Shown here piece by piece: positions 9,155 through 55,688 of a stretch of 64,000 nt of DNA (position 1 is its first letter; the number at the start of each line of letters is the position of its first letter). The DNA is taken from positions 1 to 64,000 of IMG/VR virus record IMGVR_UViG_3300042549_005931, one strand, 5' to 3'. The notes beneath the pieces are model-generated. The model saw nothing but the letters and a program-made list of their open reading frames with translations, made no database searches and was not told the origin of the DNA. The translations under genes and the position numbers were made by a program.

Positions 9155-9775
9155 ATGAAAATAAGTTTCGCAATAACAGTTTGCAACGAGTTGGAGGAAA
9201 TCAAGAAGTTGGTTCCGTTCTTACTGGAAAACAAGAGAGTTCAGGACGAGATAGTAGTTCTTTATGACAATAAGAATGGTAATCCTGAGGTGTTAGATTT
9301 CTTATTACCTTATAACAAATTACCAAATGTCCAAACATGGAGAGGGTTTGATTTTGAGGATAACTTTGCAGATTGGAAGAACAAACTAAATGAATACTGC
9401 ACAGGAGATTACATCGTTCAAATCGACGCTGATGAAATGATTAGTAAGTACATGATTCAAAATATCAATGTTATTATTGGTATGAATCCTGATGTTGATT
9501 TATATTATCTACCAAGAATTAATACGGTTGATGGTTTAACTCCCGAACATATTGATAAATGGAAGTGGAGTATTGATGAAAAAGGGTGGGTTAATTTTCC
9601 GGATTATCAAGGAAGAGTTTATAAATCTGATTTAAAATGGTCAGGTAAGGTTCATGAAAGTATTATCGGGTCTAAAAAGTATTCACTTTTACCTGAAGAT
9701 TTTGTATATTGCATTCAACATCATAAAACAATTGAACGTCAAGAAAAACAAAATAATTACTATAATACACTATGA
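9155..9775 (+). CDS. GT2-like glycosyltransferase
   Basis: ISFAITVCNE, IDADE (DxD), FPDYQGR, KVHE. Confidence 0.85.
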   Translation: MKISFAITVCNELEEIKKLVPFLLENKRVQDEIVVLYDNKNGNPEVLDFLLPYNKLPNVQTWRGFDFEDNFADWKNKLNEYCTGDYIVQIDADEMISKYMIQNINVIIGMNPDVDLYYLPRINTVDGLTPEHIDKWKWSIDEKGWVNFPDYQGRVYKSDLKWSGKVHESIIGSKKYSLLPEDFVYCIQHHKTIERQEKQNNYYNTL

Positions 9776-18927: not shown

Positions 18928-19323
18928 TTTTTTAAATACGTTAATTGATTTTTTATTCCATTCATCAACGAATGATTTGACCGGTCCATTTGTGTGATTT
19001 TTAATCACAAGATATAACATATCTGTTGCACCGTAGTTTCTTTCACCGACATGTTGTTTAGAGAACACATTGTATATAACATCATCATCTAACCAGCAAT
19101 ACCCATAAATCTTTTTTTCATGATATGCAACAAAGAATTTATGACCATTTAAAATTCTGTCTTGTGCATCATCTAAATTAAACATTAAGTCCCAATTAAG
19201 TTCATTGTTAAACATCTTTATACAATGTTTAATAATTTGGTAGTCATATGTTTCTTGGATTTCAATTTCTTCTGATATATTTCTATCAATTAAATCATTT
19301 GAATTAAGAATATAATTAATCAT
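18904..19323 (-). CDS. GNAT-like acetyltransferase
   Basis: IYGYCW, YNVFS, VDEWNKKSINVFKKLGF (motif B N..S..F.KLGF). Confidence 0.65.
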   Translation of the reverse strand: MINYILNSNDLIDRNISEEIEIQETYDYQIIKHCIKMFNNELNWDLMFNLDDAQDRILNGHKFFVAYHEKKIYGYCWLDDDVIYNVFSKQHVGERNYGATDMLYLVIKNHTNGPVKSFVDEWNKKSINVFKKLGFNLNL

Positions 19324-20027
19324 ATTAATACGTTTCTTTTTTGGAATTGTTTTTCAAACTTATCCCAAACCCATTGTTTTAATTCATCATTTATCACAAT
19401 TTTACTACTTACTTTACTACTATGATTTAATTTTTCAATGTTTAGTCTTTCTCCAAACTGATTATAAATGAAATCTGAAAATTTATCAATTTCAGATATA
19501 TCAAATTCATAATCTGCCGGTTCATTTTCTTTAATCCAATTTTGAGATAGTAGAACCGATAATATACCATTATAATGTCTAACGACGAATCCATTAATAA
19601 GATGAATATCTTTTAGTTCTTTTTCTTTTATCAATCTTAAATGAATACTATCCCATTCAGAATTATCAGTAGAGTATAATGTATTCACAAACTCAAAATC
19701 AAATGTTTTAAAAATAAAATCATTATCAACATCTTCCCATTTTATAATTGGTGTGTATAATTTTGATTTTTCCGTTATATGAAAAAAATATTGTAGACCT
19801 GACAACCACTTATCAAACCAATCTCTTTTTATACAGATAGTTTTCCGTATTCCAAACTCTTCATATAATATAGATTTTTTAAAATGAGTATGTTCATTTG
19901 GGTATTCTAAATCCAAATCTAAACGTTTTATATTTAAATTTGAAGTTAATAAAGCTTTTTCTATTGAAACGGATGCACATCTTGGAATTGATAACCAAAT
20001 CAATTCATTATTTATCAGTAACCCCAT
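19320..20027 (-). CDS. Sulfotransferase-like protein
   Basis: LSIPRCASVSI resembles the 5'-PSB loop (HIPKxAxTS); KRDWFDKWLSG resembles the 3'-PB motif. Confidence 0.6.
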   Translation of the reverse strand: MGLLINNELIWLSIPRCASVSIEKALLTSNLNIKRLDLDLEYPNEHTHFKKSILYEEFGIRKTICIKRDWFDKWLSGLQYFFHITEKSKLYTPIIKWEDVDNDFIFKTFDFEFVNTLYSTDNSEWDSIHLRLIKEKELKDIHLINGFVVRHYNGILSVLLSQNWIKENEPADYEFDISEIDKFSDFIYNQFGERLNIEKLNHSSKVSSKIVINDELKQWVWDKFEKQFQKRNVLI

Positions 20028-20154: not shown

Positions 20155-21663
20155 TTAGCAACCACCCGTACAATAACCATTATAACCCCCAAATTCGGTT
20201 GCATAGGTACCAATACATCTAAAACCTTTACCACAGGTGGCATTGTTACATTCGGAACATGGGTCATTATAATATCCACCACAAAAACAAGCTGAACCTT
20301 CACTGTTGTGTTCTATGGCAACATACGATGTTGTATTATTCTCATCCGATTTTGTTAAAAATAAATGTTGTCTTTCAACCGTTAATACCCACCCCTCAAA
20401 TATACTATGTGTTCTTTCTATTGTACTTACTATTTTTTGAACAAAAGATAATTCTGATGTTGAAGTATCGATTAACATAACAATGTCACCCGGTTTAAGA
20501 ATACCTATCCTAATAAATCTAATAACATCATCTCTTTCAACCAAATATCTTGATTCCGATACATCACTCCATGTACTACCATCTTGGAATCCTATTGTTA
20601 TAGAATTTGTTTTTCTGTGAATTCTAACCTTGTTAGTGATTTTATTTGTAGAATAGGTTGAACCCGTAATTAATTGGTTTATATCTATTTCATAATTTAC
20701 ATCTTCATCTATAACATCTACATTATTAGGGTTGGGTATGTCTATAGTTTTTAAATCGTCGCCAATTTCTAAATCTAACGCCGTTTTAAAACTACCATCG
20801 GCCATTTCAACTAAATCAGTATCTTCTAATTTTGGTGTCCAATCACTCTTAATTGTTGTTAAATAACGGGCTCTATCGCCTAAATAACTAAAATTAATTT
20901 CATCGTATTCTGGTTGTTCATCTATGGTATCAAAACATATTTTATGATATTGACCAATTTGTAATGATTCTAAATTGGGTGGAAATAATAAATTTAAACT
21001 TCTTACAACTTGTATATGGTTGTTATATAATTTATTAGAATTATAATAATATGGCATTAAAAAATATTCACCATTAACTTCATTAAGTATTGTATTTAAT
21101 TCTTCTTGAGTTGATACTTTAAATAATTTCGGGTATTGTGATTTATTATAATGTGGACCCGAAGTTTTTAGTATAAAATTTGGGTGGTTACCGTTATCAA
21201 GTATGTTTGTTATTGAATTTACCAAGGTACCATCACCTAAACGGTATGCAAATTCGGAACCAAATGATTGATTTTTTATTAGATTTAAAAAATTAACTTT
21301 ATTAGAACAATATTCATCATCAACAATCGCTGTTGTATCATACGCACTTCGTATAATTAATGTGGTATCATTATCTTCTATATATGGTATTGTTAATGAA
21401 CTATATACTGTATGCATATTACATTCAATATCTACAGATTTAGAAAGTTCATCATAAAAACCAGGTATAGCTCCAATGTATTCAATTTTAGTGAAACCGT
21501 TGTCACTGATAAATTGTAGTAAACTTGTTAGATTAAGTGATTCCTCATTTGATTCAATTCTTGTAGTAAGATTGTCCCATCCAACATTTGTATTGATTTC
21601 AATTGGGACTAAATCCCCATTTGAATTATACATAAAATCGCTACCAATTAAAACTGTCCTCAT
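20155..21663 (-). CDS. Circularly permuted ATP-grasp domain, Hint domain and Cys-rich C-terminal peptide fusion
   Basis: N-terminal GSDF..GDLVPIEINTNVG (D..ExN), PNFILK, YFLMPYY, VVRS; Hint from about K278 (LEDTDLVEMADGSFKTALDLEIGD) to WVLTVERQHLFL..AIEHN453; then a 49-aa, 8-Cys peptide. Confidence 0.75.
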   Translation of the reverse strand: MRTVLIGSDFMYNSNGDLVPIEINTNVGWDNLTTRIESNEESLNLTSLLQFISDNGFTKIEYIGAIPGFYDELSKSVDIECNMHTVYSSLTIPYIEDNDTTLIIRSAYDTTAIVDDEYCSNKVNFLNLIKNQSFGSEFAYRLGDGTLVNSITNILDNGNHPNFILKTSGPHYNKSQYPKLFKVSTQEELNTILNEVNGEYFLMPYYYNSNKLYNNHIQVVRSLNLLFPPNLESLQIGQYHKICFDTIDEQPEYDEINFSYLGDRARYLTTIKSDWTPKLEDTDLVEMADGSFKTALDLEIGDDLKTIDIPNPNNVDVIDEDVNYEIDINQLITGSTYSTNKITNKVRIHRKTNSITIGFQDGSTWSDVSESRYLVERDDVIRFIRIGILKPGDIVMLIDTSTSELSFVQKIVSTIERTHSIFEGWVLTVERQHLFLTKSDENNTTSYVAIEHNSEGSACFCGGYYNDPCSECNNATCGKGFRCIGTYATEFGGYNGYCTGGC

Positions 21664-21935
21664 TATATTATTGTTTTATTGTATTTTTTTGTGGACACAT
21701 CCACCTCGTCAACTTTATCCCAATGACCTAATCTACACGCACCTTTAATTGGTGAGAAAATTTTTTTACCGATTGGACATCCACACTCACCACATTTGGT
21801 TTCAAATAAATAAGAATTTCTTATCCAATCACATTTTAAACAAATCTCATGTCGCTTTAGTGCCAGTTCTTGTTCTTCTTCTGTTGGATTAGCCGCAGTT
21901 ACCCAAGATTTAAATATTTCAGTGGCCTTGTTCAT
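21663..21935 (-). CDS. Small Cys-rich, putative metal-binding protein
   Basis: RHEICLKC..KCGECGC..KIFSP..AC.LGHW pattern. Confidence 0.7.
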   Translation of the reverse strand: MNKATEIFKSWVTAANPTEEEQELALKRHEICLKCDWIRNSYLFETKCGECGCPIGKKIFSPIKGACRLGHWDKVDEVDVSTKKYNKTII

Positions 21936-22073: not shown

Positions 22074-23744
22074 TTATTTATATACAATATAGTTATTTAA
22101 TACCAAAATATCAAGTTCGGTATCGTAAAACGTTTTTAATGCATCTTGTGGTGTTAATACCATTGTTTTATCTTTCACATTGAATGATGTGTTTAATAAA
22201 ATTGGGTATCCTGTTAATTTTTCAAATTCTCGGAGTATATTATAAAATAACGTTCCTCTATATACTGTTTGAACTCTGGCACTACCATCTATGTGTGTCA
22301 CTGCCGGTAATTCATCTCTATGTGATTGTCTCACTTGAACCACTTGATTCATGTAAGGTATATCATTTGTCATCATAAAATAATCGTGTTGTCTTTCCAT
22401 TGTTACCGCCGGTGCAAATGGTCTGAAAGATTCACGCTTTTTAATGACACTATTAATCCTATCCTTCATGTTAGGTAACAATGGACTTGCTAAGATGGAA
22501 CGATTACCTAACGCTCTTGAACCAAATTCACATTTACCGTTAAAACATCCAACCACTTTACCATCTTTAATTTTCTTTGCAATCCAAATCGCTAATTGTT
22601 CGTCATTAGGAAATTTAAAATGTTTAGGATTTTTACCAATAGCATCCACAATATCTTTATTAGAATATGATGGACCCAAAAATGGGTTATTAGTTATTTT
22701 CTTTTTTAATTTATTGTTCTTGACCAAGTAATGAATACATGCTCCGATTGCTGAACCAGCATCTGATGGTGCCGGTGGTATCCATAAATTTTTAAAATTT
22801 GTATTGTTAATTATTTTACCATTTGCAGTACCGTTATATGCACAACCACCAGCTAATGATAGGTCGGTATTATCAAGAAATGTGGATATATAATTGAGAA
22901 CCTCAAATAAAATTTCTTCGTATACTCGTTGTACTGATGCAGCCAAATCATTATGATATGGTTCAATACCTGTACCGGGTATTCTTGGTTCTAATTCCAA
23001 TAACTCAATAAGATTTTCATTAAACATGAGTGTGTTGGAGGTGTTCCAAGTAAACACATCCATGTTACATTTTAATTCATTATCTTCATACGTTATTAAT
23101 TTCCTAACTTTATTGATGTATGTGTTTGGATTACCGTAAGAAGCTAATCCCATCACCTTATATTCACCTTCATTTGGTCTAAACCCAAGGAATGATGTCA
23201 TTGCAGAATAGAACAATCCAAGTGAATGTGGATATTGTGCAAGACTATCATAAACCATATTCCCACCATAATCAATAAACCCAAGTGACATGGTATCTAA
23301 TTCACCAACACCATCGATTGATAATGTTGTGGATTTATTAAATGGTGATGTGTAATGTGAATAGTATATGTGCGATTCGTGATGTGTTGAATAATGTACG
23401 TTATTTGAATATAACGGTAACATCTTATTCAATTCACTAATGTTCTTTTTAATTCTTAAATACGATTTGATAGAATATATTGGATTCTTAAAAAACTGTG
23501 GTTTAATGTTATCGATAACCCTTTTTAATTTTAATTTAGGGTCTTCATAATAACAAACAGTTTCAATTTTATCACGAGTTAAATTATATTTTTTAAAAAT
23601 ATATTCAAGTGTATTAACCGGAAACGAACTATCGTGTTTGATACCCGTGAACTTTTCTTCTTCACATGCAAAAATTAATTCCCCGTTCTTGAATAAACAA
23701 GCCGATGAATCATGATAATAAGCCGAAATTCCGATTATGTACAT
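22074..23744 (-). CDS. NodU/CmcH-family carbamoyltransferase
   Basis: HDSSA..EEKF..KH, HHESH, IDGVGE, EYKVMGLASYG, AGGCAYNGTANG, EFGSRALGNRSIL, RPFAP, THIDGSARVQT, LLNTSFN. Confidence 0.95.
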   Translation of the reverse strand: MYIIGISAYYHDSSACLFKNGELIFACEEEKFTGIKHDSSFPVNTLEYIFKKYNLTRDKIETVCYYEDPKLKLKRVIDNIKPQFFKNPIYSIKSYLRIKKNISELNKMLPLYSNNVHYSTHHESHIYYSHYTSPFNKSTTLSIDGVGELDTMSLGFIDYGGNMVYDSLAQYPHSLGLFYSAMTSFLGFRPNEGEYKVMGLASYGNPNTYINKVRKLITYEDNELKCNMDVFTWNTSNTLMFNENLIELLELEPRIPGTGIEPYHNDLAASVQRVYEEILFEVLNYISTFLDNTDLSLAGGCAYNGTANGKIINNTNFKNLWIPPAPSDAGSAIGACIHYLVKNNKLKKKITNNPFLGPSYSNKDIVDAIGKNPKHFKFPNDEQLAIWIAKKIKDGKVVGCFNGKCEFGSRALGNRSILASPLLPNMKDRINSVIKKRESFRPFAPAVTMERQHDYFMMTNDIPYMNQVVQVRQSHRDELPAVTHIDGSARVQTVYRGTLFYNILREFEKLTGYPILLNTSFNVKDKTMVLTPQDALKTFYDTELDILVLNNYIVYK

Positions 23745-25444: not shown

Positions 25445-26194
25445 TTATATTATATTATTTTTTATGTGTGGTATTACTAACTCCTCACTAAATTTTTTAT
25501 GACCAAATTCTGTTGGGTGTATACCTATAAATCCAAAATTATCTGGACTATTAAATCCTCCAGTTTTACCATAATTTTCATTTACCCATTCGTGACACCC
25601 ACCAATTGGTAAAAACTTTGTTCTATCAACCATTTTAAACCAATGTTGGACTTCAGGTTCATTAATTCTATTTGTGGTTTTTGGGAAAAATATATCGGTA
25701 TATGTTGTCATAAAATACTTTACTCCCTTTTTTTCTAAATACCATTGTGTCAATAAAATATTTTGAATTGTTAATATCATTGCCGAAATGTCATTATGAA
25801 ATAAACGATAATATGTTGGTGAATTGGCAACTTCCCAATGTGGGTTAGTTATAATCCAATTTCTATATAAGTTGTCATTGTGTGGGATTACACTTGTAGG
25901 ATTTTCAACCCAACCGTCAGTGTTATTTAATTGGTTAGTGTTTTCACTGTAGAATTCATGTCTATCAACACCGCTCCACATAACCCCAACCAAAATATCG
26001 TCAGGATTTTTACCTTCATTTAATAACGTATCAACAGCATAAATTAATTTTTTTGAAATTAATCCATTACCTTGACTTGCCATACCAACATTTTTTAAAT
26101 CATAATTAATACCTTCCGCAACAAATGTTGGCCAATTCCATGGTTCAAATGTAAAACTACATCCACTGGTCACCAGTATTTTTTTATTATCCAT
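25445..26194 (-). CDS. SGNH-hydrolase-like protein
   Basis: GCSFT, GNGLI, MWSGVDR, HPTEFGH. Confidence 0.65.
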   Translation of the reverse strand: MDNKKILVTSGCSFTFEPWNWPTFVAEGINYDLKNVGMASQGNGLISKKLIYAVDTLLNEGKNPDDILVGVMWSGVDRHEFYSENTNQLNNTDGWVENPTSVIPHNDNLYRNWIITNPHWEVANSPTYYRLFHNDISAMILTIQNILLTQWYLEKKGVKYFMTTYTDIFFPKTTNRINEPEVQHWFKMVDRTKFLPIGGCHEWVNENYGKTGGFNSPDNFGFIGIHPTEFGHKKFSEELVIPHIKNNII

Positions 26195-27332
26195 AGTAAT
26201 ATACTTTTATATTTTTATTTTTATATTCTCTCCAAACATCCAATATAATACTATTTTTAGGAAAATCAATATTATAAAACTCACCCCTATGACCTAACAA
26301 ATAAATTGCCGGTTTATCTATAATGTCGAAATCGACATCTTTACCCATTTCTTTTACATAGTAACTTGTAAGTATGGTTGTGGAACCTTCAACATAATCG
26401 ACACCAGGTTTATATGATTTACCTAAAATTACTATTGGTAGATTATATGAATTTGATAAATTTACCAATTTTTTTGCAATGTTATATGCTTGCTTTTCTC
26501 GTGCTAACATTATTGAATCGAATAAATCATAACCTAAATCGTACTTATTTGCCATCCATCTTAGTGCTATATTGTCACGTGGATGACACCCTCCCCCATC
26601 TCCCATACCTGCCTTCATGTAAGATTTACTGACAATTCGTTTTGTACTTCGTTCTAATGCTTGGGTTACCACATCTGTATTAATATTACCATTTTTCTCA
26701 GCAACATCTTGAATCATATTAACAAGTGCCACCTTAGTTGAAATGAAGGTGTTATAAAAAATCTTAATAGCTTCCGCCTCATCCCACGTTCCTATTTCAA
26801 AACGAGTATCTTTGTTAACAAATGTCCTATAAAAATCAACCAATAACTTTGCATCACCGGTCTCAGTTCCATCTTCTGTTCCAATGATAATCATCTCAGG
26901 ATTTACCATATCTTCTTTTACGGTCCCCATTGCTATTAAATAGGGGTTGTATATAAATCTATAGTTTCTAACCAATTGTATTAGACTATCACTTATTGTA
27001 CCGGGTAAAACCGTTGAAATTAAAACAACTAGTTGATTGATATTTGTCCATTCATTTATTTGATATAATATTGTTTTAACTATTTCATAATCAAAATCTT
27101 TTGGTTCTAAATGCGATGTTGGATATCTACCATCGTAATCAGGATGATGTGGTGTTGGTAGAGCAATAAAAATAATATCTTTATTTTTACAAACATCTTG
27201 AATGGTGTCCACCATTTTAAAATTTATTGGGTTAACTTTATTAATATCGTAACCCTCGACATAATGATTTTCTGCCATTACTTCGGCGGCATCTTTTCCC
27301 AATTTACCAACCCCTATAAATCCAATTTTCAT
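26187..27332 (-). CDS. UDP-glucose/GDP-mannose dehydrogenase family protein
   Basis: GVGKLG, LPTP, STVLPGT, AEAIKIFYN, GGGCHPRD, GKSYKP. Confidence 0.9.
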   Translation of the reverse strand: MKIGFIGVGKLGKDAAEVMAENHYVEGYDINKVNPINFKMVDTIQDVCKNKDIIFIALPTPHHPDYDGRYPTSHLEPKDFDYEIVKTILYQINEWTNINQLVVLISTVLPGTISDSLIQLVRNYRFIYNPYLIAMGTVKEDMVNPEMIIIGTEDGTETGDAKLLVDFYRTFVNKDTRFEIGTWDEAEAIKIFYNTFISTKVALVNMIQDVAEKNGNINTDVVTQALERSTKRIVSKSYMKAGMGDGGGCHPRDNIALRWMANKYDLGYDLFDSIMLAREKQAYNIAKKLVNLSNSYNLPIVILGKSYKPGVDYVEGSTTILTSYYVKEMGKDVDFDIIDKPAIYLLGHRGEFYNIDFPKNSIILDVWREYKNKNIKVYYYG

Positions 27333-28777
27333 ATTAACTTTTTATTTTTATTATTATTGATATTTTCATCTTTAAACGAAAGAAAATATAAAACATCATC
27401 AATATCTTTATCTGAAATAAATTTAAAAAAATTGTTTGTTAAAACTTCTTCCATTTCTTGCGTAACCCTAAAACATTTATCCATATCCCATTTTGAAATT
27501 TCTTCCAAAACATCGATGATTTTTTCCATTCTTTTAATAAAATTTATCTCATCGTCATAACTTTCATCCCACCATCTATCAAAAGTCATATAACCCAATT
27601 CTTTTAATTTTTTTAATGAATGTGGATTACCACACATGATAAAAGGTTGACAAGCTAATATTGGTTTAAATGTTTTTTCTGAGAAAAAAATAGTGGTATT
27701 ATCCACCATTGATTCACTAATTATATTTAAAAAACTACGACCGTGTGCCTCTTTATTAAAAATACCAGCTTTATTATTCTCTAAGTCTTCCACATCATAA
27801 GTTGAGTGTTTTTTTGAGTCATATGTTTTATAGAATTCAAATAATTTTTCTTTTGAATGTTTATATTCATTTGGAATATTAACACTAATTATTTTAGAGT
27901 ATTCATCGGAATCCATCTCGGGTGTACCTCCCAATGTTGTTATTGATTTACCTTTTAAATTTTCATTTAAATTTAACTCGGCAAATAATAATAATCTATG
28001 TAATTTTGGTACCCTATTGAAATTTAAAAAATGAATATTTTTTTTAATAGTCTTATTATTTTGGAGCATATTATAAAATATGTTACTTAAAGAATTTTTT
28101 GTAAAAATATTTAATTTTTTACCATAATGAAACCATATATTATGTTCAAAATATGAATATGGGTATACCGTAAAATTATCTTCAATTATTCCTCTTGATA
28201 TAAGTTCATATTGTCTGTCCTTCGCCTGCATATTTGCAGTTATCATAATCACATCGTCACTATTTAATGAATATTTTTTAGATAATTTATTGAGCCAAAT
28301 AAATTCATTATCATTCATACCAAAAAATCCTTCAGTAGGTTGTATAAAAACTAATTTAGCCATTTTATTTTTAATAGATTCAATAACCATATCGTTTAAA
28401 TTCATAGTCTCATATCTTATGAATAAATCATTGTTATATAAAACCACCGGATAAATAAATTTTTGATTATTGTCATAAAAATGCTTGACGGTATTTTTTA
28501 CCATATTTTCATAAGTGTTATCTAGTATATTTTCCAAATTTTGACTGGCAAATTGAAATAATTCATGTTTTAATTGAACGTCATCGTTATTTTTTAAAAA
28601 ATATGGAAATTTAATGCCTAATTCTTCTTCAACAACAGATAGTGGTTTATGGGTAATTGTATGCCAAGGATGTATATCATAATGAGCGACATTTGAGGTA
28701 CCGTACAATGGTTTACCATTTTCATCGTACACTAATATATTATCGTAAGCCACATTAATTTTTAAATTTCTTATCAT
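27329..28777 (-). CDS. Hypothetical protein, possibly GT-B-like
   Basis: FNRVPKLHR, IISES..FFSEKTFKPI..QPF..LKELGY.TF..WWDESYD. Confidence 0.5.
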   Translation of the reverse strand: MIRNLKINVAYDNILVYDENGKPLYGTSNVAHYDIHPWHTITHKPLSVVEEELGIKFPYFLKNNDDVQLKHELFQFASQNLENILDNTYENMVKNTVKHFYDNNQKFIYPVVLYNNDLFIRYETMNLNDMVIESIKNKMAKLVFIQPTEGFFGMNDNEFIWLNKLSKKYSLNSDDVIMITANMQAKDRQYELISRGIIEDNFTVYPYSYFEHNIWFHYGKKLNIFTKNSLSNIFYNMLQNNKTIKKNIHFLNFNRVPKLHRLLLFAELNLNENLKGKSITTLGGTPEMDSDEYSKIISVNIPNEYKHSKEKLFEFYKTYDSKKHSTYDVEDLENNKAGIFNKEAHGRSFLNIISESMVDNTTIFFSEKTFKPILACQPFIMCGNPHSLKKLKELGYMTFDRWWDESYDDEINFIKRMEKIIDVLEEISKWDMDKCFRVTQEMEEVLTNNFFKFISDKDIDDVLYFLSFKDENINNNKNKKLI

Positions 28778-40950: not shown

Positions 40951-41535
40951 CTATCTAAATGTAGAACCGCCAACCCACAAGACTAAACTTTTACGAACGC
41001 CTTGGGTCACCGGTGTTATTCTATGTAACATATAACTTGGAAATAAAATTGCACATCCTTTATGTTTTTCTACGTTTTGGATACCTGCACCTGTCCACAA
41101 TTCTAACTCACCACCTTCATAATCCTCGGGATTCGATAGCTGAATGGTTATACTTACTTTTCTATGGTTAATAGGATGTGGACCAATGTCCATATGCCAT
41201 CCATAATGTCCACCATCATCATAATATTCGGTATATTGTATTGAGTCAACTATTGAATGTAAATCAAATTTCCAAACATTATTTGCTTCCAAAATAAACG
41301 ATTGTATTTTATCATATACCCAATGTGATTTATCATCAATATGAATCCATTTAACTTTTGATTTACGAACATTTTTTACTTCATCACCTCCTACAACGGT
41401 AGCTTCTTCATATGGATATAATTCTTTAAGATTATCTATCCATTCCAATTCTTGCTCAGAAAATCCTTCTTTAAAGCAATAGTAATTTGATTGGTCAATC
41501 GTTGAGTCTGTATTGAAAATTGGTTTAATTTGCAT
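40951..41535 (-). CDS. 2OG-Fe(II) oxygenase (PKHD/prolyl-hydroxylase-like)
   Basis: WHMD, RKVSITIQLS..YEGGEL, FPSYMLHRITPVT.G.RKSLVLW. Confidence 0.9.
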   Translation of the reverse strand: MQIKPIFNTDSTIDQSNYYCFKEGFSEQELEWIDNLKELYPYEEATVVGGDEVKNVRKSKVKWIHIDDKSHWVYDKIQSFILEANNVWKFDLHSIVDSIQYTEYYDDGGHYGWHMDIGPHPINHRKVSITIQLSNPEDYEGGELELWTGAGIQNVEKHKGCAILFPSYMLHRITPVTQGVRKSLVLWVGGSTFR

Positions 41536-42172
41536 GATTTATTAATTTTTTTACCACATCTTGAAACGTATCGGATTCTAATTGCATCACATGTTCATAA
41601 TCTTTACTTGTAACACTCAATTCACCAACTGCCTTAAAATTAGTTATGTTATATATTTTTCTTTTATGATAATCTTTATTCCACCAATATAATAAGTCAT
41701 CACCAAAAAATACTTTTAATCCTTTGTCGATAACAATGTAGTTTGATTTTTTGATTATCATCATACAACCAAAACCTAAACTTCTACACGGTGCTTCTTC
41801 AAAAATATAATCATCATTATCGTTATTGTGTTCTTCATAAAAGTTTGCATTTGCATCAAACCCAATAACACCAAAATCTAAATCATTGATTCTTGATAAG
41901 TTGTGATGTAAATTTTTAAAATTAAAACTTATATCATCATTCAATATACATAAAATTTCGTTAGTTGCATACTCAAAACCTAAATTCCACGCAGGATTTA
42001 CAAAAATGTTCTCATCTTGTTTGAATACTTTTATTTGTGGGTCATTAAATGATGAATCTGTGTTATCGATAACAATAAATTCTGAATTTGGAATGTTGGC
42101 TTCTTTAAATAATTCGATATTGTCCAATATCTTATCCGATTTCCACAAAGTTGGGGTTATAAATGTTATCAT
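41525..42172 (-). CDS. GT2-like glycosyltransferase
   Basis: VIDN, VNPAWNLG, ILNDD, FGC, FFGDD. Confidence 0.75.
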   Translation of the reverse strand: MITFITPTLWKSDKILDNIELFKEANIPNSEFIVIDNTDSSFNDPQIKVFKQDENIFVNPAWNLGFEYATNEILCILNDDISFNFKNLHHNLSRINDLDFGVIGFDANANFYEEHNNDNDDYIFEEAPCRSLGFGCMMIIKKSNYIVIDKGLKVFFGDDLLYWWNKDYHKRKIYNITNFKAVGELSVTSKDYEHVMQLESDTFQDVVKKLINHAN

Positions 42173-42229
42173 ATTATCTAATATATAAATTTTATTAATA
42201 ATAAGGTATATTATAACTTAATTATTGTG

Positions 42230-42736
42230 TTAAAAAAATGATTGAAGGGTGATACGTAAATTAGCGTCTAAATTAACTGTGGATACTGAATGGTGTACAC
42301 CACCTGTTTGAATTACACCTAAGTTTCTTTCGGGTTTAATGGCTCTAATTTCATTATTTAACTTATACATAAAATAACCACCCCAATCTGGGTCCCAATA
42401 ATCATTTAAGTATATAGTCAATGCAGATTCTACATGTGAATCATCGTGCCATGGTATATAACTTAATTTAGTCCAAATATATAACATTAATTGTTCAACA
42501 TTTAGTCCTGTTTTAGCATCTATTTCAGCCTTTAATTTGTTATGTAAAGGACTATTCTCATCTATGTCTATTATTAAAACCGGTGTAGTTTGGTTTCTTA
42601 TTTCATCTGGCCAACAGAAATTAGTTCTTCCCAAATATGGATTAGGACTTTTTATAGTTTTTTCCGCAAATGTTTGTACTTCATCAAACAAATCGTTTGA
42701 TAGGAATTCATCATATACTATTATGTTCTTATTCAT
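42230..42736 (-). CDS. 2OG-Fe(II) oxygenase
   Basis: WHDD, TIYLN..WGG, HSVS, RITLQ. Confidence 0.88.
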   Translation of the reverse strand: MNKNIIVYDEFLSNDLFDEVQTFAEKTIKSPNPYLGRTNFCWPDEIRNQTTPVLIIDIDENSPLHNKLKAEIDAKTGLNVEQLMLYIWTKLSYIPWHDDSHVESALTIYLNDYWDPDWGGYFMYKLNNEIRAIKPERNLGVIQTGGVHHSVSTVNLDANLRITLQSFF

Positions 42737-42739
42737 AAT

Positions 42740-43381
42740 TTATGGTTTAGGGGGGTGAAAAAGGAATGGTTTAGGGGTGACAAATAAAAATTTACTTATA
42801 GCATATCTACCATACCCAGAAAATGGTGTGTTGTTTTGTATCATTTTTATAGGATTTACTGAGTGTAGATTATGAGATGGGAATATTACTAATCTATTAT
42901 TTTTATATTCTATTTCTGTTCTTTCATCACCCAACATTAAATTACCACCTTCAAATGATTGTGGAGTTTTATTACACCAATATATACAGGATAAAATGGC
43001 TTGGTCCTTGTGAGGTTTATAATAATCACTATCTTGATAGTAACTAATAAATGTTCGGTCATGTCCCACAAATTTAAAATATTTAAATTCATTGGGTAAA
43101 TCGTCTATAATATCGGATACTTCCTCATTATATATTTTTTCAAAATTATTTAATATGGTTGATGTTTCTCTTTTTTGGTATAAATCATCTAAAAATAAAA
43201 CATTATTTTTCTTTAATGGTATTTTTGTTTCGAGGTCTATTGCACCATTAGATTTTTCAGGAGGTAACATAATTTCCTCTTTAGTTAAAAAATCTAACTC
43301 TAACCAATTCTTTTTTAATTCGTCATCATTAAAAAAATCATCAATAATTAAATAATTGTAAGAACTACTTGTAACTTTCAT
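42740..43381 (-). CDS. 2OG-Fe(II) oxygenase
   Basis: PHKD, FEGGNL, NNRLVIFPS..HSV, GRYAI. Confidence 0.88.
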   Translation of the reverse strand: MKVTSSSYNYLIIDDFFNDDELKKNWLELDFLTKEEIMLPPEKSNGAIDLETKIPLKKNNVLFLDDLYQKRETSTILNNFEKIYNEEVSDIIDDLPNEFKYFKFVGHDRTFISYYQDSDYYKPHKDQAILSCIYWCNKTPQSFEGGNLMLGDERTEIEYKNNRLVIFPSHNLHSVNPIKMIQNNTPFSGYGRYAISKFLFVTPKPFLFHPPKP

Positions 43382-43386
43382 TTTAT

Positions 43387-43950
43387 TTATTTTTTATAAC
43401 AATACCATCCGGTTAGTATGTATTTTGTTTCTGTATTTGAAATAACTCCTCTATGGGTGTGAGTAAAATCGGCTGGCCATATTAGTAATTTACCCACTTC
43501 CGCCTTTTCAATGTGATTTTGATATAAAAACTCGGTACCGCCATCTTTAACATCATTTAAATAAATCATCCACACTAATAATCTATCGATATATTCCTTA
43601 TCTCCATTTCTTTCACAATGCCACCCATAAAATCCTTCTCCTGGTTCGTATTTTTGAAGATTGAATGTTGATAATGAAAATGGATTCATGTGTTTTAAAG
43701 CAGAATACTTTTCTACATATTCGTCTATTCCAATGTTTACTGATTTGACTAATTCATCAAATAAATCATACCATTCAATATAATTTTTTTCACTTTCTAA
43801 TATACCCGGATAAAATAAAATTTCACTCGCTCTTTTAAAGTCTTCAGGTAATTCAGATGATTGTTTTAAATCAGAATGTTCAAATGTGGTGATAAATTCT
43901 TCACATATCTCTTTAGATAAAACATTAGGTTTAGAATATATAAAATCCAT
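43387..43950 (-). CDS. 2OG-Fe(II) oxygenase (HxE type)
   Basis: QKYEPGEGFYGWHCE, YLNDV..GGTEF, WPA.FTHTHRG, KYILTGW. Confidence 0.88.
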   Translation of the reverse strand: MDFIYSKPNVLSKEICEEFITTFEHSDLKQSSELPEDFKRASEILFYPGILESEKNYIEWYDLFDELVKSVNIGIDEYVEKYSALKHMNPFSLSTFNLQKYEPGEGFYGWHCERNGDKEYIDRLLVWMIYLNDVKDGGTEFLYQNHIEKAEVGKLLIWPADFTHTHRGVISNTETKYILTGWYCYKK

Positions 43951-43951
43951 A

Positions 43952-44539
43952 TTATACTTTTAAAGAGTACCAACCCGTTATAATATATTTAGTTTTAGTG
44001 TTACTTATTTGTCCTCGATGATAGTGAGTCCAATCTGTTGGCCATATAAGTAACTTACCAGTTTCCGCCTTTTCAGTATGGTTTTGATACATAAATTCTG
44101 TACCCCCATCATCTAAATCATTTAAATAAACCATAAAAACTAACATTCTAGGTAATGTGGAGACATGTGCTCTCTCACAGTGCCATTGATGAAACCCTTC
44201 ACTAGGTTTGTATTTCTGTATATTATACCCATCTAAAACAAATTTAGACATGTTTTCTAAAGGTTCATAACGTTCAACATAATTATCAATTTCGAATTGT
44301 AATTTGTTTTGAAATTTATTAACTAAACTACCCCATTCTTTTTTATTTTCTTCCTTATCCAAAAAATTGGGCCAAAATGTAACGTCAGTAGACTGTTTTA
44401 TATAATCTACTTCTACAGCTTCACCATATTTTCCGGCAATACATCCTCTAGCACGTAATGGTGATGACTCAAATTTATTGATTAAATCCGCACACATTTC
44501 AGAAGATAAAAAATTGTTTTTTCTATATATAAAATCCAT
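43952..44539 (-). CDS. 2OG-Fe(II) oxygenase (HxE type), paralogue of 43387..43950
   Basis: QKYKPSEGFHQWHCE, YLND..GGTEF, THYHRG, KYIITGW. Confidence 0.88.
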   Translation of the reverse strand: MDFIYRKNNFLSSEMCADLINKFESSPLRARGCIAGKYGEAVEVDYIKQSTDVTFWPNFLDKEENKKEWGSLVNKFQNKLQFEIDNYVERYEPLENMSKFVLDGYNIQKYKPSEGFHQWHCERAHVSTLPRMLVFMVYLNDLDDGGTEFMYQNHTEKAETGKLLIWPTDWTHYHRGQISNTKTKYIITGWYSLKV

Positions 44540-44540
44540 A

Positions 44541-45128
44541 TTATTTAAAAACAGTACCTCCTACCCACAATACTAAACTTTTACGAATACCCTTTGTTAC
44601 TGGTGTTACCCTATGTAAAATATAACTAGGAAATAACACCGCACACCCTTTTTCTTTAGGCATCTTACTTACTTTATTTCCCATCATCAACTCTAAATCA
44701 CCACCCTCATATTCATCGGGGTCAGATAATTGAACTGTTATACTAATTTTTCTTGTATTATAAGGATGTGGTCCAGTATCTACGTGCCAATCATAATGAC
44801 CACCATTTTCGTAGTATTGTGTGTATTGTACTGTATCTAAAATTGATGGTATATCGAATTGCCACATTTCTTTATTGGCCATCATAACAATATTGGATAA
44901 ACGACTATACACCCAATCTGTCTTTTCATCATGGGTTAACCATTTTACATCTGATTTTCGCATCGTATTCTCATCTTCAAACGCACCTGTGGATGCTTTT
45001 TGTATATCGTATAATTTTTGTAAATTATTTAACCATCCTAATTCTTCTTCGGAAAACGAATCGTAATAAGGATAAAACCCCATTGGGTTACTTTGACTAT
45101 GAACGGGAAATACCGGTTTTAAATCCAT
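44541..45128 (-). CDS. 2OG-Fe(II) oxygenase (PKHD-like), paralogue of 40951..41535
   Basis: WHVD, RKISITVQLS..YEGGDL, HRVTPVTKGIRKSLVLW; ATG at 45128 aligns with the paralogue's start. Confidence 0.9.
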   Translation of the reverse strand: MDLKPVFPVHSQSNPMGFYPYYDSFSEEELGWLNNLQKLYDIQKASTGAFEDENTMRKSDVKWLTHDEKTDWVYSRLSNIVMMANKEMWQFDIPSILDTVQYTQYYENGGHYDWHVDTGPHPYNTRKISITVQLSDPDEYEGGDLELMMGNKVSKMPKEKGCAVLFPSYILHRVTPVTKGIRKSLVLWVGGTVFK

Positions 45129-45138
45129 AACTTTTTTT

Positions 45139-45681
45139 TTATAATTCAAACGAAAAACCATATGACAAATTAATTCTTAATTTATCACCTTTAACTACTT
45201 CTGAAGAATGTTCCACTATACCAGCATCACACCTCCATAACATTTTTTCTTCAACTGGAAGTAATTCACCACCATATATTGGTTTACCTCCACCATCGGG
45301 AAACGAAATTAATAAATTATATCTAACAGTATAATATTCACGAAAACTATCATCAATGTGTGGTTCAACATATGAGTCTTCCCCAACAATCCCTATCCAA
45401 TCATAATTTACAGGTGCGTGTAAGGGATTTGTAATGTTTTCTAAATCTAATATTTTATTTCTTATTGCATAAAATATATTTGGTTTTTCATCATTGGGAT
45501 ATAATATTCTAAAATGACGTTTTAATCCTGATTTATATTGGTCTTTTTCTGAATTTACGGGTTGGGAAAAACTCATACCTGTTTGTTCGGATAATACCCA
45601 ATCTCTTAACTCCGATTGTTCATCATCATTAATAAAATCTCTATAACCATAGGTTCCGCCAAAATATACTTTTTCAAACAT
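45139..45681 (-). CDS. 2OG-Fe(II) oxygenase-like protein
   Basis: PHID, YNLLISFPDGGG, EHSS, RINLSYGF. Confidence 0.7.
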   Translation of the reverse strand: MFEKVYFGGTYGYRDFINDDEQSELRDWVLSEQTGMSFSQPVNSEKDQYKSGLKRHFRILYPNDEKPNIFYAIRNKILDLENITNPLHAPVNYDWIGIVGEDSYVEPHIDDSFREYYTVRYNLLISFPDGGGKPIYGGELLPVEEKMLWRCDAGIVEHSSEVVKGDKLRINLSYGFSFEL

Positions 45682-45687
45682 AATTTA

Positions 45688-47310
45688 TTATTTCAAATAT
45701 ATTAAAAAATCTGCGTGGTCTTGTAATATTTTTAAATTTAATAACATATTTCTTTTAAATTTCTCATCGAAAGTAAAAAAATGTTCTCTACGAACGTCAC
45801 TATTAGTGGCTCCATAAAGTTCAAACGCTCTTTCTCTATTAAATAAATGTAACCCATTAGTTATCGCATAAAAACTAGATACATCATACGCGTCATTAAT
45901 TGTTTTTATAAATTTACGTTCCGGCATAGTAATAGAACATTGTTCTAAGTATTTTTCTATGTTTTCTGTAATTTTATTTTTATCTCTAAATGTTTTCCAA
46001 AATTCAGAATCACTACGTTTTGTTAAATAATGTAGGTAAATAAAATCTTTAGTATCATCGTGAAATTTGTTCACTCTCTCATTATATCTATTAATATAAA
46101 ACTCATTGTTTGAAATAGCACCTAAATTATTGGAGATATACTCATTTAATGATGTAGTGATTGTCCAAATTGATGTTGCTTCTAACGGTTCGATAAAACC
46201 GGAAGACAAACCAATAGCTATACAGTTTTTAATCCACGTTTGTTTGTATCGTCCGGCATCATATGTAAATGGATTACCAAATTCGATATCGTTTCCAAAT
46301 CGTTCTTTGATTTCTTCCTTTGCTTGTTCATCTGAAATAAAATCTGAATCAAACACATAACCACAACCAAATCTACCTTCAACCGGTATCTTCCACATCC
46401 ATCCATATTTTAAAGCAATTGATTCTGTATATGGTGGTACATCATTACTTTCATTAGGGATTACAAATGGGATTGCTCGTTTCATTGGTAAACTATCTGA
46501 ATATGATTCCCATTCACCCTTAAAATGTTTACCGATAATTAATCTATTGAACCCACTACAATCAAACACAAAATTACAAGGTAATTTATCACCCCGTTTA
46601 GTTGTAATTTCTTTTATAGAACCATCATTTTCATTACTTATAATTTCATTGAGTTCGGATTCAACATACCTAACTCCACGGTACATAGCATTCTTTTTTA
46701 AAAACTTGGCCAATAATCTAGCGTCAAAATGCATACCAAAACTAGATAATGAATTAAAATGTGTAATTGGGTTTTGGTCTTTATTATCTATATTTACAGA
46801 TGGAATAAAGTTAACTAAATTTCTTTTTGATGCATTAGCACTAAATGAAATATCATCCAATGATTCTCCTTTAGCAATTGAATTTAAAACTAAAGTAGAA
46901 ATCCCACCACCATTTGTTGCATCATTAGTTTCGAATGAATTTACATTTGTGTTTTCAAAAAATGGGTGAAAATATGACGTATCATCACCATTCCAATCGG
47001 TAAATTTAATACCACTTTTGATTGTTCCTTTCGCATATTTTACAATATCTGAAACGGAAATTCCTACACTGTCCATAAAATGAACAAAATGTGGTGTTGT
47101 TCCTTCACCAGCACCTAAAATACCAATTTCAGCACTTGCCAATACGGTAATATTAATCCATGGATAGTTTTTCTTTAAAAATAAAGCAGTCATCCATCCG
47201 GCAGTTCCACCACCTACAATGACAAAATTGAATTTATTTTCTATAACCTTGTCTAACGATTGGTCCATAGGGCCAATAGGACCGATTGGTCCAATTTGTT
47301 CTTCTTCCAT
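45688..47310 (-). CDS. Flavin-dependent halogenase (tryptophan-halogenase family)
   Basis: GGGTAGW, GAGEGT, TIKSGIKF (catalytic Lys position), DCSGF, GWMWKIP, FIEPLEATSI. Confidence 0.9.
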   Translation of the reverse strand: MEEEQIGPIGPIGPMDQSLDKVIENKFNFVIVGGGTAGWMTALFLKKNYPWINITVLASAEIGILGAGEGTTPHFVHFMDSVGISVSDIVKYAKGTIKSGIKFTDWNGDDTSYFHPFFENTNVNSFETNDATNGGGISTLVLNSIAKGESLDDISFSANASKRNLVNFIPSVNIDNKDQNPITHFNSLSSFGMHFDARLLAKFLKKNAMYRGVRYVESELNEIISNENDGSIKEITTKRGDKLPCNFVFDCSGFNRLIIGKHFKGEWESYSDSLPMKRAIPFVIPNESNDVPPYTESIALKYGWMWKIPVEGRFGCGYVFDSDFISDEQAKEEIKERFGNDIEFGNPFTYDAGRYKQTWIKNCIAIGLSSGFIEPLEATSIWTITTSLNEYISNNLGAISNNEFYINRYNERVNKFHDDTKDFIYLHYLTKRSDSEFWKTFRDKNKITENIEKYLEQCSITMPERKFIKTINDAYDVSSFYAITNGLHLFNRERAFELYGATNSDVRREHFFTFDEKFKRNMLLNLKILQDHADFLIYLK

Positions 47311-53800: not shown

Positions 53801-53966
53801 TGGTATTTGTCTCAGGTTTACCTAATAATAATTCTCCACCTTCGTCACCCCCAATTGCGTCTAGTGTTAATTTTCCACCAGCACCACCACCAACCGATAA
53901 AGAACCGGTAATTACAGAATTATTTTTAGCAATGACACCATTGCGTGCCACAAATTCATTTGCCAT
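50838..53966 (-). CDS. Collagen-like fibre protein with C-terminal intramolecular chaperone (peptidase S74)
   Basis: About 250 G-X-Y triplets; WFRSQG..W....YGGGIFM.D.TWVR head motif; YSDERLKEN..GVSAQE..PEVV..YDKIVPLLIEAIKEL. Confidence 0.92.
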   Translation of the reverse strand: MANEFVARNGVIAKNNSVITGSLSVGGGAGGKLTLDAIGGDEGGELLLGKPETNTTLTGSGITIDSYQNKIRIFEQGGSARGAYIDLTETAAGVATNLLVGGPQGPTGPQGNVGPTGPQGNQGNVGATGAQGNQGNTGLTGPQGNQGNVGPQGNVGPTGPQGNQGNTGLTGPQGNQGNTGPAGTQGNQGATGPQGNVGPTGPQGNQGNTGVTGPTGPQGNQGNTGPAGNNGLNGNVGPQGFQGNQGGTGPTGPQGFQGNQGATGPAGGSSNVSGPQGPTGPQGVIGPQGNQGNTGPTGPQGNQGNTGPTGPQGNQGNTGPIGNTGPSGPQGNQGNSGPQGNVGPTGPQGNQGNTGPTGPQGNQGAFGNLGPQGNVGTQGNQGATGPQGNVGPTGPQGNQGNTGLTGPQGNQGAFGNLGPQGNQGNTGAQGNVGSQGNVGPTGPQGNQGNTGPTGPQGNQGNTGPIGPVGPQGRQGPSGNNGNNGAQGNQGNTGPTGPQGNQGNTGATGPQGNQGNTGATGPQGNQGNTGATGPQGNQGNTGATGPQGNQGNTGPTGPQGNQGNTGPIGPVGPQGRQGPSGNNGNNGAQGNQGNTGPTGPQGNQGNTGQIGPVGPQGRQGPSGNNGNNGAQGNQGNTGPTGPQGNQGNTGPAGNNGNNGATGPQGNQGNTGPIGPQGNIGPQGNIGPIGPVGPQGRQGPSGNNGTNGNIGPQGNQGNTGPAGNNGNIGPQGNQGNTGPAGNNGNTGPQGNIGPQGNQGNTGPAGNNGNTGPQGPIGPVGPQGNIGNTGPAGPQGNQGNTGPTGNVGGAGPQGPIGPIGPVGPQGRQGPSGTNGTNGNTGPQGPTGPSGTSNVYASAMNQYVNTNNGPTFDTVYTPNWFRSQGSSGWFSGTYGGGIFMEDNTWVRVYNGKAFYVPNQIAATSDITAYYSDERLKENLGPIENPLDKVSKLNGFYYVNNDLAKSFGYNDSKLQVGVSAQEIQSVLPEVVTLAPFDFGTTDDGKTESKSGENYLTVKYDKIVPLLIEAIKELTEEVNKIKKHVGLD
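51424..53664 (-). repeat. Collagen G-X-Y coding repeat (dominant 36-bp unit encoding GPQGNQGNTGPT/GAT)
   Basis: 9/36-bp periodicity with synonymous variation; one interruption (GGSSNVS) near 53150-53170. Confidence 0.95.
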
Positions 53967-54985: not shown

Positions 54986-54991
54986 ATATTT

Positions 54992-55687: not shown

Positions 55688-55688
55688 A

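Follow-up and report, generated by a model that had tools for sequence, protein, structure and literature searches.

The closest described relatives of the protein considered here are the type A bacterial intein-like (BIL) domains and the PT-HINT domains (PF07591), which share a Hint fold, a C-terminal His-Asn pair, the lack of a nucleophile at the +1 position and a hypervariable region directly downstream, and for which cleavage rather than splicing is the expected outcome (PMC4031507). A further precedent is BIL2 of the Tetrahymena protein BUBL, a “single-ubiquitin-dispensing platform” in which a Hint domain serves as a single-shot conjugation device, handing the module linked to it to another protein once (PMC8616854). 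The protein that we compare with these systems is the product of gene T, our name for the 502-amino acid (aa) open reading frame (ORF) at 20155..21663 (minus strand) of a 64,000-nucleotide stretch of DNA, here called the window, which is part of the 269-kb IMG/VR contig UViG_3300042549_005931 of a myovirus-like phage. It consists of an ATP-grasp head, a Hint domain and a Cys-rich tail. The reading that we favor, with a probability of roughly 45%, is that the product of gene T, found in large myovirus-like phages of aquatic origin, is an enzyme made together with its own cargo and acting for a single turnover; the Hint domain would release the cargo, and the head would then probably ligate it.

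On the enzyme side, the standard example of a circularly permuted ATP-grasp is eukaryotic glutathione synthetase, and ATP-grasp enzymes of this type activate the C-terminal carboxylate of a peptide. Other ATP-grasps, including the graspetide ligases (e.g., microviridin MdnB/C) and pheganomycin PGM1, act on ribosomal peptides, in which they make amide or ester linkages, and PGM1 acylates the N-terminal amine of its peptide, which is the chemistry proposed below for gene T. To our knowledge, MdnB/C and PGM1 are canonical, non-permuted ATP-grasps encoded apart from a leader-containing precursor, none of them carries a Hint domain, and their cores are not Cys-rich. Graspetide systems use a separate, leader-bearing precursor with a core of Thr, Ser or Lys together with Asp or Glu, whereas the putative substrate of gene T is fused to the enzyme and depleted in Asp and Glu. 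Polymorphic toxins, in which PT-HINT-type domains release hypervariable C-terminal modules, combine an N-terminal trafficking domain with a co-varying downstream immunity gene; gene T, in contrast, has an enzyme at its N-terminus, no signal sequence and a conserved family next to it. By the features that define inteins, canonical BILs, graspetide systems, polymorphic toxins and targets of diversity-generating retroelements, gene T belongs to none of them, although each of its parts falls within a known superfamily. The literature searched holds no description of an ATP-grasp, Hint and cargo architecture and no curated family for it, nor did this architecture appear in Pfam, PHROGs, PDB sequences or BFVD, in keeping with the view of an earlier, sequence-only reading of the window that it was undescribed.

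That reading had placed an ORF at this position without giving its strand; it is a single 502-aa ORF on the minus strand, ending in a TAA stop codon (20155–20157), and the motifs quoted for it are all found at the residues to which they had been assigned. The protein begins MRTV, an N-terminus that is conserved in its relatives, so the start codon, which overlaps the stop of an upstream 90-aa gene (fam2) by 1 nt, can be taken as real. At E ≤ 1e-3, 771 relatives were found among sequences clustered at 90% identity, nearly all of them about 500 aa long and aligned end to end, and a profile search of a library of 50%-identity representatives gave 357 matches, 153 of them below 1e-30; with this many mostly full-length relatives, the ORF is not a chance reading frame. 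The family amounts to hundreds of clusters from uncultured aquatic phages, on contigs of up to ~335 kb, and none of the 771 relatives carries a functional name. Neither the protein on its own nor a profile of 24 sequences returned anything usable from Pfam, PHROGs or PDB sequences, tblastn of gene T, fam2 and its frequent neighbor fam3 against 50,697 cultured phage records gave no match, and a scan of cellular genomes, which was pattern-limited and would show close relatives only, found none. For the conservation counts given below, all representatives were aligned to a hidden Markov model of the family and 234 full-length relatives were tallied. Along the protein, the motifs run in the order GSDF..PIEINT (residues 7–25), PNFILK (161–166), YFLMPYY (200–206), PKLEDTDLVEMADG (277–290), WVLTVERQHLFL (425–436) and IEHN (450–453); the remaining 49 aa form a tail with 8 Cys. 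The full-length protein, modeled with AlphaFold2 on a 102-sequence alignment, has a mean predicted local distance difference test score (pLDDT) of 84 and a predicted TM-score (pTM) of 0.78, with values below 50 only at residues 453–456.

Residues 278–453 (20305..20832, minus strand), for which a Hint domain had been proposed, match only Hint-type structures in the PDB: the top 50 of 50 Foldseek matches are inteins, BIL2 of Tetrahymena BUBL, Hedgehog HhC and a Clostridium BIL (E 9e-8 to 1.5e-4; target-normalized TM-scores, TMt, mostly 0.6–0.73), and the region therefore has a Hint fold. In BFVD, matches were to the Hint domain only (query-normalized TM-score, TMq, ≤ 0.28), and no viral model there spanned both domains. 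Block F is retained (VERxHLFLT, with its His and Asp), as is the terminal His452-Asn453 pair, with His at position 452 in 219 of the 234 relatives (13 gapped, 2 with another residue) and Asn at 453 in 221 (13 gapped, no other residue). The N-terminal half of the chemistry is gone. The first residue of the domain is Lys in gene T and Lys in 152 relatives, His in 23, Leu in 13 and various others in the rest, with no consistent nucleophile; the block B equivalent reads Y-S-T-N and lacks the His of T-x-x-H; and no Cys occurs anywhere in residues 278–453 of the protein. The residue following His-Asn varies freely (A, L, V, S, Y, F, G, D, I, E, P and others) and does not conform to the Cys, Ser or Thr required for splicing.

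Class 1 splicing was rejected because position 1 holds no Cys, Ser or Thr and block B has no T-x-x-H, and classes 2 and 3 because there is no +1 nucleophile and, with no Cys in the domain, no block F Cys nucleophile; without a nucleophile at any of the three places, all three classes as defined in PMC4031507 are excluded, as the sequence-only reading had argued from the Lys at position 1 and the missing T-x-x-H. The C-terminal flank is hypervariable and swappable for unrelated domains, and the two flanks are not halves of one conserved host protein, as they are around inteins. The residues thus show that the domain keeps the apparatus for C-terminal cleavage only (the block F His and Asp, the penultimate His and the terminal Asn). 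From sequence and model together, we strongly infer an autocatalytic cut after Asn453, at the N453/S454 bond (junction codons cac aac/agt, 20302..20310, minus strand); conservation of His-Asn beside a +1 residue that is free to vary is hard to explain without Asn cyclization. The usual first residue of a BIL is Cys, from which an N-terminal thioester can form, whereas the gene T domain starts with Lys (or with His, Leu and others in relatives). It differs from BIL and PT-HINT proteins also in having as its N-terminal partner an ATP-grasp enzyme rather than a secretion or filament module, and in the lack of a co-varying immunity gene. Judged by its residues and modeled fold, it is best described as resembling a type A BIL domain from which the N-terminal Cys, too, is gone. 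A weak Pfam match to PT-HINT was seen in one relative, P0171 (E 3.4e-4, 21.3 bits, under the 27.7-bit cut-off), and none for gene T itself.

The head, residues 1–277 (20833..21663, minus strand), had been read as an N-terminal, circularly permuted ATP-grasp, and structure prediction with Foldseek bears out both this fold and that of the Hint domain. Modeled alone with AlphaFold2, the head has a pLDDT of 91.9 and a pTM of 0.87, and its Foldseek ranks 1–15 in the PDB all belong to the eukaryotic glutathione synthetase family, including glutathione and homoglutathione synthetases and nematode glutathione synthetase-like effectors (E from 1e-5; probability 1.0 for the best to 0.66); from rank 16 onward the matches are noise, with the canonical ATP-grasp PurK at E 0.87. 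This family (PDB 3kak, 5oes, 1m0w) is the sole significant structural match and has the same permuted order of motifs: in the head, the Mg2+ motif D9...E22-x-N24 comes first, followed by a Rossmann-like part, the strand with K166, the YFLMPYY hinge and the strand with R221. The metal motif thus sits at residues 9–24, right behind the conserved Met1 and ahead of the putative nucleotide-binding Lys and hinge. Because a sequential structure aligner picks out permuted glutathione synthetases only, the permuted order in gene T is supported. The head is also ~200 residues shorter than these enzymes, 10–12% identical to them (TM-score 0.29–0.42) and, unlike them, fused to a Hint domain.

A second line of evidence comes from hhalign, which places residues 9–31 on residues 257–279 of the 306-residue Escherichia coli DdlB (P ~2e-4, more exactly 1.8e-4), pairing D9, E22 and N24 with Asp257, Glu270 and Asn272, which bind metal close to the C-terminal end of this canonical ATP-grasp. 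The residues D9, E22, N24, R105, D115, N162, K166 and R221 are invariant in 228–233 of the 234 relatives, and D9, E22 and N24 alone in 228–232. GshB as a single sequence found nothing in gene T, and a canonical ATP-grasp profile built from DdlB relatives, which were only sequences 84–100% identical, added little. Taken together, the model and the invariant residues show residues 1–277 to be a minimal circularly permuted ATP-grasp of the amide ligase type with a fully conserved active-site set, for which ligation activity is predicted.

The part that would be set free, residues 454–502 (20158..20304, minus strand), is a 49-aa cargo with 8 Cys, a C-G-K motif in mid-tail, a calculated mass of 5060.5 Da in the reduced state and a pI of 4.4. 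Across the family, cargo lengths range from 1 to 1,242 aa. Among the sequences following His-Asn taken from 240 relatives, 206 are 18–100 aa long (short tails), 33 relatives carry 110–1,242 aa, some of these Cys-poor and some with BACON domains (P0171, P0172, P0175), and a few distant relatives (P0236, P0239, P0253, P0263, P0255) have just 1–7 residues, e.g., AKQLW, RCAYK or KKME; if complete, these last would free very short peptides, or cleavage would serve something besides cargo delivery. The description of the cargo as a Cys-rich peptide, given in the sequence-only reading, thus holds for the short tails and fails for the very long and very short ones, and its term RiPP-like (for ribosomally synthesized and post-translationally modified peptides) fits the short tails and not the larger cargos.

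Cys makes up 17.3% of residues in the short tails versus 0.5% in the enzyme body, and its count is even in 204 of the 206 (6 in 53, 8 in 124 and 10 in 23). The tails are hypervariable around a framework of Cys that is conserved, enriched in Gly, Trp, Pro and Tyr and depleted in Asp, Glu, Leu and Ile. In these respects, they resemble knottins, hevein-like lectin domains and cyclotides, which are 30–60 aa long with 6, 8 or 10 Cys, rich in Gly, Pro, Tyr and Trp, and built of hypervariable loops on a fixed Cys frame; the gene T cargo differs in being made in the bacterial cytoplasm by a phage and in its predicted release by a Hint domain rather than by signal peptidase or asparaginyl endopeptidase. 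Judging from the even Cys counts, the cargo may well fold with disulfides once it is outside the reducing cytoplasm, probably after lysis. A search of ten diverse tails against Pfam gave no significant match, the best being Chitin_bind_1 (E 3.9) and gamma-thionin (E 1.3).

A further feature of the locus lies in the genes around it. When the ORFs of 83 loci (L001–L083) were clustered into families, at least 9 unrelated families around gene T were found to share a C-terminal tag with the consensus K(-7)-x-x-[K/N](-4)-[T/S/K](-3)-L(-2)-[I/L](-1)-COOH, or in short K-x-x-[KN]-[TS]-L-[IL]. It is carried by 90% of the members of fam2, the Zn-ribbon-like protein adjacent to gene T, by 81% of the Fe(II)- and 2-oxoglutarate-dependent (2OG-Fe) oxygenases, by 100% of the radical S-adenosylmethionine (SAM) proteins, by 100% of fam3 (sulfotransferase-like), 96% of fam4, 79% of fam7, 94% of fam11, 96% of fam15 and 100% of fam37, and by 0% of the carbamoyltransferases, adenosine phosphosulfate (APS) kinases, cytidylyltransferase-like proteins, DUF2061 proteins and most others. 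By position relative to gene T, 74–89% of genes at +1 to +4 are tagged versus 8–27% upstream. The window has four tagged genes within 7 kb of gene T and, elsewhere, two loose matches only, in the tail-fiber region. Two phage loci with 2OG-Fe oxygenases and no gene T have 0 of 37 and 0 of 25 ORFs tagged, and among distinct fam2 sequences 60 of 78 with gene T nearby are tagged versus 0 of 16 without it. By this distribution (position, T-less loci and fam2), the tag is a system-level feature linked to gene T. An origin as the imprint of a promoter or ribosome-binding site lying over the stop codon was rejected, as conservation ends at the stop codon. Possible roles are that of an acceptor C-terminus for the ligase or that of a docking motif bringing tailoring enzymes to the tethered cargo.

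These elements can be assembled into the following scheme. Asn453 would cyclize to a succinimide and thereby break the N453/S454 bond, leaving a ligase-Hint fragment of 51.8 kDa that ends in this succinimide and freeing a cargo of 5.06 kDa whose alpha-amine is new. Because essentially all relatives have an intact head fused in cis to cargos as different in length as 1 and 1,242 aa, the ligase would be expected to act on a feature common to all cargos. The termini are the sole features that cargos share, and as Hint cleavage would create the N-terminal amine, this amine is the preferred candidate; a free C-terminal carboxylate, which any protein has, would not explain the fused Hint domain. By analogy with glutathione synthetase, the head would be expected to activate the carboxylate at the C-terminus of a peptide and to join an amine to it, so that the cargo amine would be coupled to a carboxylate through an acyl-phosphate. 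In the ligation ascribed to type A BILs, in the part of PMC4031507 that cites its reference 37, the freed C-extein amine is the nucleophile; by comparison, the acyl-phosphate would replace the thioester that the gene T Hint domain lacks. BUBL likewise differs in being independent of ATP and in working through a Cys1 thioester at the C-terminus of its module, whereas gene T has no thioester chemistry, has an ATP-grasp and would expose the N-terminus of its module. On these analogies, ligation of the freed cargo amine is plausible.

The likeliest donors of the carboxylate would be the neighboring proteins that end in the tag, first among them the fam2 Zn-ribbon protein; for short cargos, self-cyclization may also be possible. 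The 2OG-Fe oxygenases, radical SAM proteins, sulfotransferase-like proteins and genes for synthesis of 3′-phosphoadenosine 5′-phosphosulfate (PAPS) that are clustered with gene T would either tailor the cargo or be the tagged partners themselves. The partner genes and the tag speak for either a ligation that involves another protein or the recruitment of tailoring enzymes. In its boldest form, the scheme describes a protein ligase that is driven by ATP, is used once and dispenses the cargo that it carries, with the Hint domain unmasking an alpha-amine, the ATP-grasp activating the carboxylate of a tag (phrog_13558, the PHROG of fam2, being the first candidate) and a native peptide bond as the product. 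In this complete form, we regard it as a long shot. If true, a hypervariable disulfide-rich or BACON-bearing binding module would be grafted post-translationally onto phage proteins; such a system of cassettes at the level of proteins would serve adhesion or host range and would be a natural, ATP-dependent counterpart to ligation by inteins or sortases.

Of the explanations that do without this scheme, the one that survives best, though we consider it unlikely, is release without coupling: the Hint domain would free a variable effector, adhesin or signal peptide, and the ATP-grasp would be an independent enzyme (making, e.g., a small metabolite or modifying a host protein) that serves as the carrier. 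It has a precedent in the PT-HINT domains of polymorphic toxins, echoed by the weak match in P0171, and it sits well with the high diversity of cargo classes and with the way in which the 3′ end of gene T evolves. The tail is ~3-fold more divergent than the enzyme, its identity being 61% where that of the ATP-grasp is 84% and 24% where it is 54% (17% with Cys excluded), which agrees with the hypervariability beside two conserved domains that the sequence-only reading had anticipated. Between near-identical phage pairs, the ~130 nt coding for the tail form a sharp local dip in identity (0.82–0.92) with 97–100% identical DNA on both sides (e.g., L030 versus L031 at 9400–9500 and L066 versus L071 at 9350–9470). 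For the pair L030/L031, the nonsynonymous and synonymous rates dN and dS are 0.001 and 0.014 in the body and 0.114 and 0.239 in the tail; overall, tail dN/dS is 0.1–0.84, mostly above that of the body (0.06–0.30), and no pair exceeds 1. The rise in both dN and dS points to local recombination together with relaxed or diversifying selection, and suggests that micro-recombination or a swap of cassettes takes place where gene T has its 3′ end. In one 211-kb contig, IMGVR_UViG_3300042892_005961 (L016 and L071), two gene T paralogues lie ~38 kb apart, 47% identical and with unrelated tails, each followed by its own fam2 and fam3. The tail as target of a diversity-generating retroelement was rejected within the 64-kb window, where there is no second copy of the tail DNA that could be a template repeat and where substitutions are not A-biased.

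A recombination hot spot of this kind suits an effector, and, like the hypervariability of the cargo and the partner genes of both paralogues, it also counts in favor of the reading that we prefer. Several observations speak against release without coupling. The fusion is retained in essentially all 357 representatives, and the best 150 include neither a free-standing head nor another carrier for the cargo. Gene T has no secretion or trafficking domain, the gene downstream of it is conserved and not a co-varying immunity gene, and the tag correlates with the presence of gene T.

A graspetide-like maturation in cis is less likely still, and we hold it to be quite doubtful. Here, the ATP-grasp would make omega-amide or omega-ester cross-links in the tethered tail via the mid-tail Lys, the Hint domain would then release the product and the clustered enzymes would modify it further, with the fusion of enzyme and substrate standing in for a leader peptide. 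A C-x-K motif is indeed present in 160 of the 206 short tails, the tail is rich in Tyr, Ser and Gly, and tailoring-type enzymes and PAPS-synthesis genes are co-clustered. However, 46 of the short tails lack C-x-K, Asp and Glu, the carboxylate partners that such cross-links need, are depleted 2.5–3-fold in the tails, and no graspetide core motif is seen. Moreover, relatives with cargos of 110–1,242 aa keep an intact ligase head even where the cargo is Cys-poor or BACON-bearing.

Head-to-tail cyclization of the released mini-protein by the ATP-grasp, yielding cyclotide-like products, would concern short cargos only, and even for these we judge it very unlikely. Enzymes of the glutathione synthetase type are generally known to activate a C-terminal carboxylate, the short tails include disulfide-rich sequences of 30–60 aa, and 62 of the 206 end exactly in Cys. 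C-terminal residues are otherwise unconserved, partner genes and tag would go unexplained, and the reaction is inapplicable to cargos of hundreds of residues or of 1–7 aa; the sequence-only reading had offered cyclization as one of two fates of the released peptide, and as a general role it is excluded family-wide by cargos of up to 1,242 aa, some with BACON domains, and by those of 1–7 aa. Least likely of all is that no processing occurs and the Hint domain is a degenerate structural module, the Cys-rich tail staying on a 57-kDa enzyme for good as a domain that binds metal or is held by disulfides. In favor are the missing N-terminal nucleophile and block B His, the possibility of zinc binding by paired Cys and matches of the tails to metallothionein and zinc-finger models that are weak and at chance level; against it, His-Asn is kept beside a freely varying +1 residue, the block F His and Asp are retained and the cargo can be replaced by unrelated domains.

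Several points also weigh against release followed by ligation, the reading that we prefer. Its two steps, cleavage and ligation, are both deduced from sequence and predicted structure. The TM-scores of the head to glutathione synthetase are low (TMq 0.29–0.42), and residues 179–210, which include the YFLMPYY region, align with DdlB residues 156–187, the adenine hinge, in the order expected of a permutation but not significantly (E 0.74). Pfam gave no match for gene T at E ≤ 10 and no ATP-grasp family among the matches of 24 relatives, so that the GSH_synth_ATP, GSP_synth and CP_ATPgrasp_1/2 models matched neither the protein nor these relatives. The few distant relatives with cargos of a mere 1–7 aa fit poorly with delivery of a cargo. 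As for the partners, 54 of 80 fam2 loci have no gene T within 5 kb, many of them beside a tail sheath gene, and the adjacency of fam2 and gene T may come partly from a shared insertion site. The association of the fam2 tag with gene T has a hypergeometric probability of ~5e-9, calculated by hand and without phylogenetic correction, and the role of the tag could be independent of gene T, e.g., as a degron or a PDZ-type ligand.

Whatever the fate of the cargo, gene T would join acyl-phosphate ligation and cleavage by Asn cyclization, two well-understood chemistries, in a combination that we have not found described. A Hint-released variable C-terminal module has precedents; what is new here is the ATP-grasp head and the linked tag system, and if the ligation reading is true, the system would be categorically new. 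If the ligase acts on its own released cargo, this would be a new route to modified, cyclized or conjugated disulfide-rich mini-proteins and could be developed into a self-contained tool for protein ligation. A hypervariable cargo together with a tag on oxygenases, radical SAM proteins and sulfotransferase-like enzymes suggests an unrecognized post-translational system at a fast-evolving interface, with consequences for host range and for understanding what the numerous unexplained 2OG-Fe oxygenase genes in myoviruses of marine and fresh waters do.

The first conserved partner is fam2, in the window a 90-aa, Zn-ribbon-like CxxC...CxxCGCP protein (21663..21935, minus strand) that matches phrog_13558 and ends in the tag ...YNKTII. 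It is adjacent to gene T in 71 of the 83 loci, usually downstream of it and in the window upstream, and it lies directly downstream also in the most distant relatives, those with large cargos (hhalign probability 99.5–99.8). The function of phrog_13558 is not annotated; one homologue, in L085, has a weak match to DUF6171. The idea that fam2 is an obligate partner of gene T was rejected, since fam2 is commoner than gene T and often stands alone by the tail sheath gene: gene T needs fam2 nearby, and fam2 does not need gene T. Six fam2 loci without gene T were inspected, and all have a shorter fam2 of 77–83 aa, in five of the six located shortly upstream of genes for the tail sheath and tail tube; in L084:150-7562, L085:8001-13745, L119:5001-8247 and similar loci, a 77-aa, untagged phrog_13558 protein is encoded right before them. 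The most divergent large-cargo relatives of gene T (997–1,667 aa, with BACON domains) are inserted exactly at this site, and the position of phrog_13558 and the insertion site together hint at a link to the tail module.

The second is fam3 (~230 aa), present in 66 of the 83 loci and represented in the window by a 235-aa sulfotransferase-like protein (19320..20027, minus strand) with the tag ...QKRNVLI. Its profile matches in the PDB are to heparan sulfate 2-O-sulfotransferase only and are not significant (E 0.3); the alignment does pair the PKxASTS and RD..S PAPS-binding motifs with the invariant residues P15, A18, S19, H48, R68 and S76, and fam3 is probably a PAPS-dependent sulfotransferase. 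Also found downstream of gene T are the multi-copy 2OG-Fe(II) oxygenases (170 genes in 72 loci), a radical SAM protein and several uncharacterized families, and often upstream are the carbamoyltransferase, APS kinase, the cytidylyltransferase-like protein and DUF2061. In the window, the untagged carbamoyltransferase of the NodU/CmcH type (family 9; Pfam E 1e-62 to 1e-64) is encoded at 22074..23744 (minus strand), and its family occurs in 37 loci. The two other tagged genes of the window encode a DUF6071 protein ending ...KNNII (25445..26194, minus strand) and a 482-aa protein of family 12 ending ...NKNKKLI (27329..28777, minus strand). A scan for promoters and terminators gave results at chance level.

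The phage also has genes for collagen-like tail fibers, two tryptophan halogenases, ThyX and many glycosyltransferases and other sugar-modifying proteins; among cultured phages, Pelagibacter phage HTVC008M and cyanomyoviruses match its DNA most closely. The two tryptophan-halogenase-like genes (45688–47310 and 48910–50445, both minus strand; phrog_2928, E ~1e-107 to 1e-111) lie 1.6 kb apart, and their closest cultured DNA match is HTVC008M at 68% identity. A 1,042-aa collagen-like tail fiber protein, the repeats of which match dozens of PHROG tail-fiber families, is encoded at 50838–53966 (minus strand). Two groups of paralogues stand out for their C-termini. Three tandem ORFs of ~230 aa at 54308–56417 (minus strand), which closely follow a 1,369-aa gene and adjoin the tail-fiber genes, end in NALKSRFNL[IKR], and arrays of paralogues ending in AQKSRFGL lie upstream of the sheath gene in the related phages L119, L121 and L129. 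A run of paralogous ORFs of ~190–215 aa at 40951–45161 (minus strand) has C-termini that are similar in pairs (VLWVGG..F[RK] and I[IL]TGWY...).

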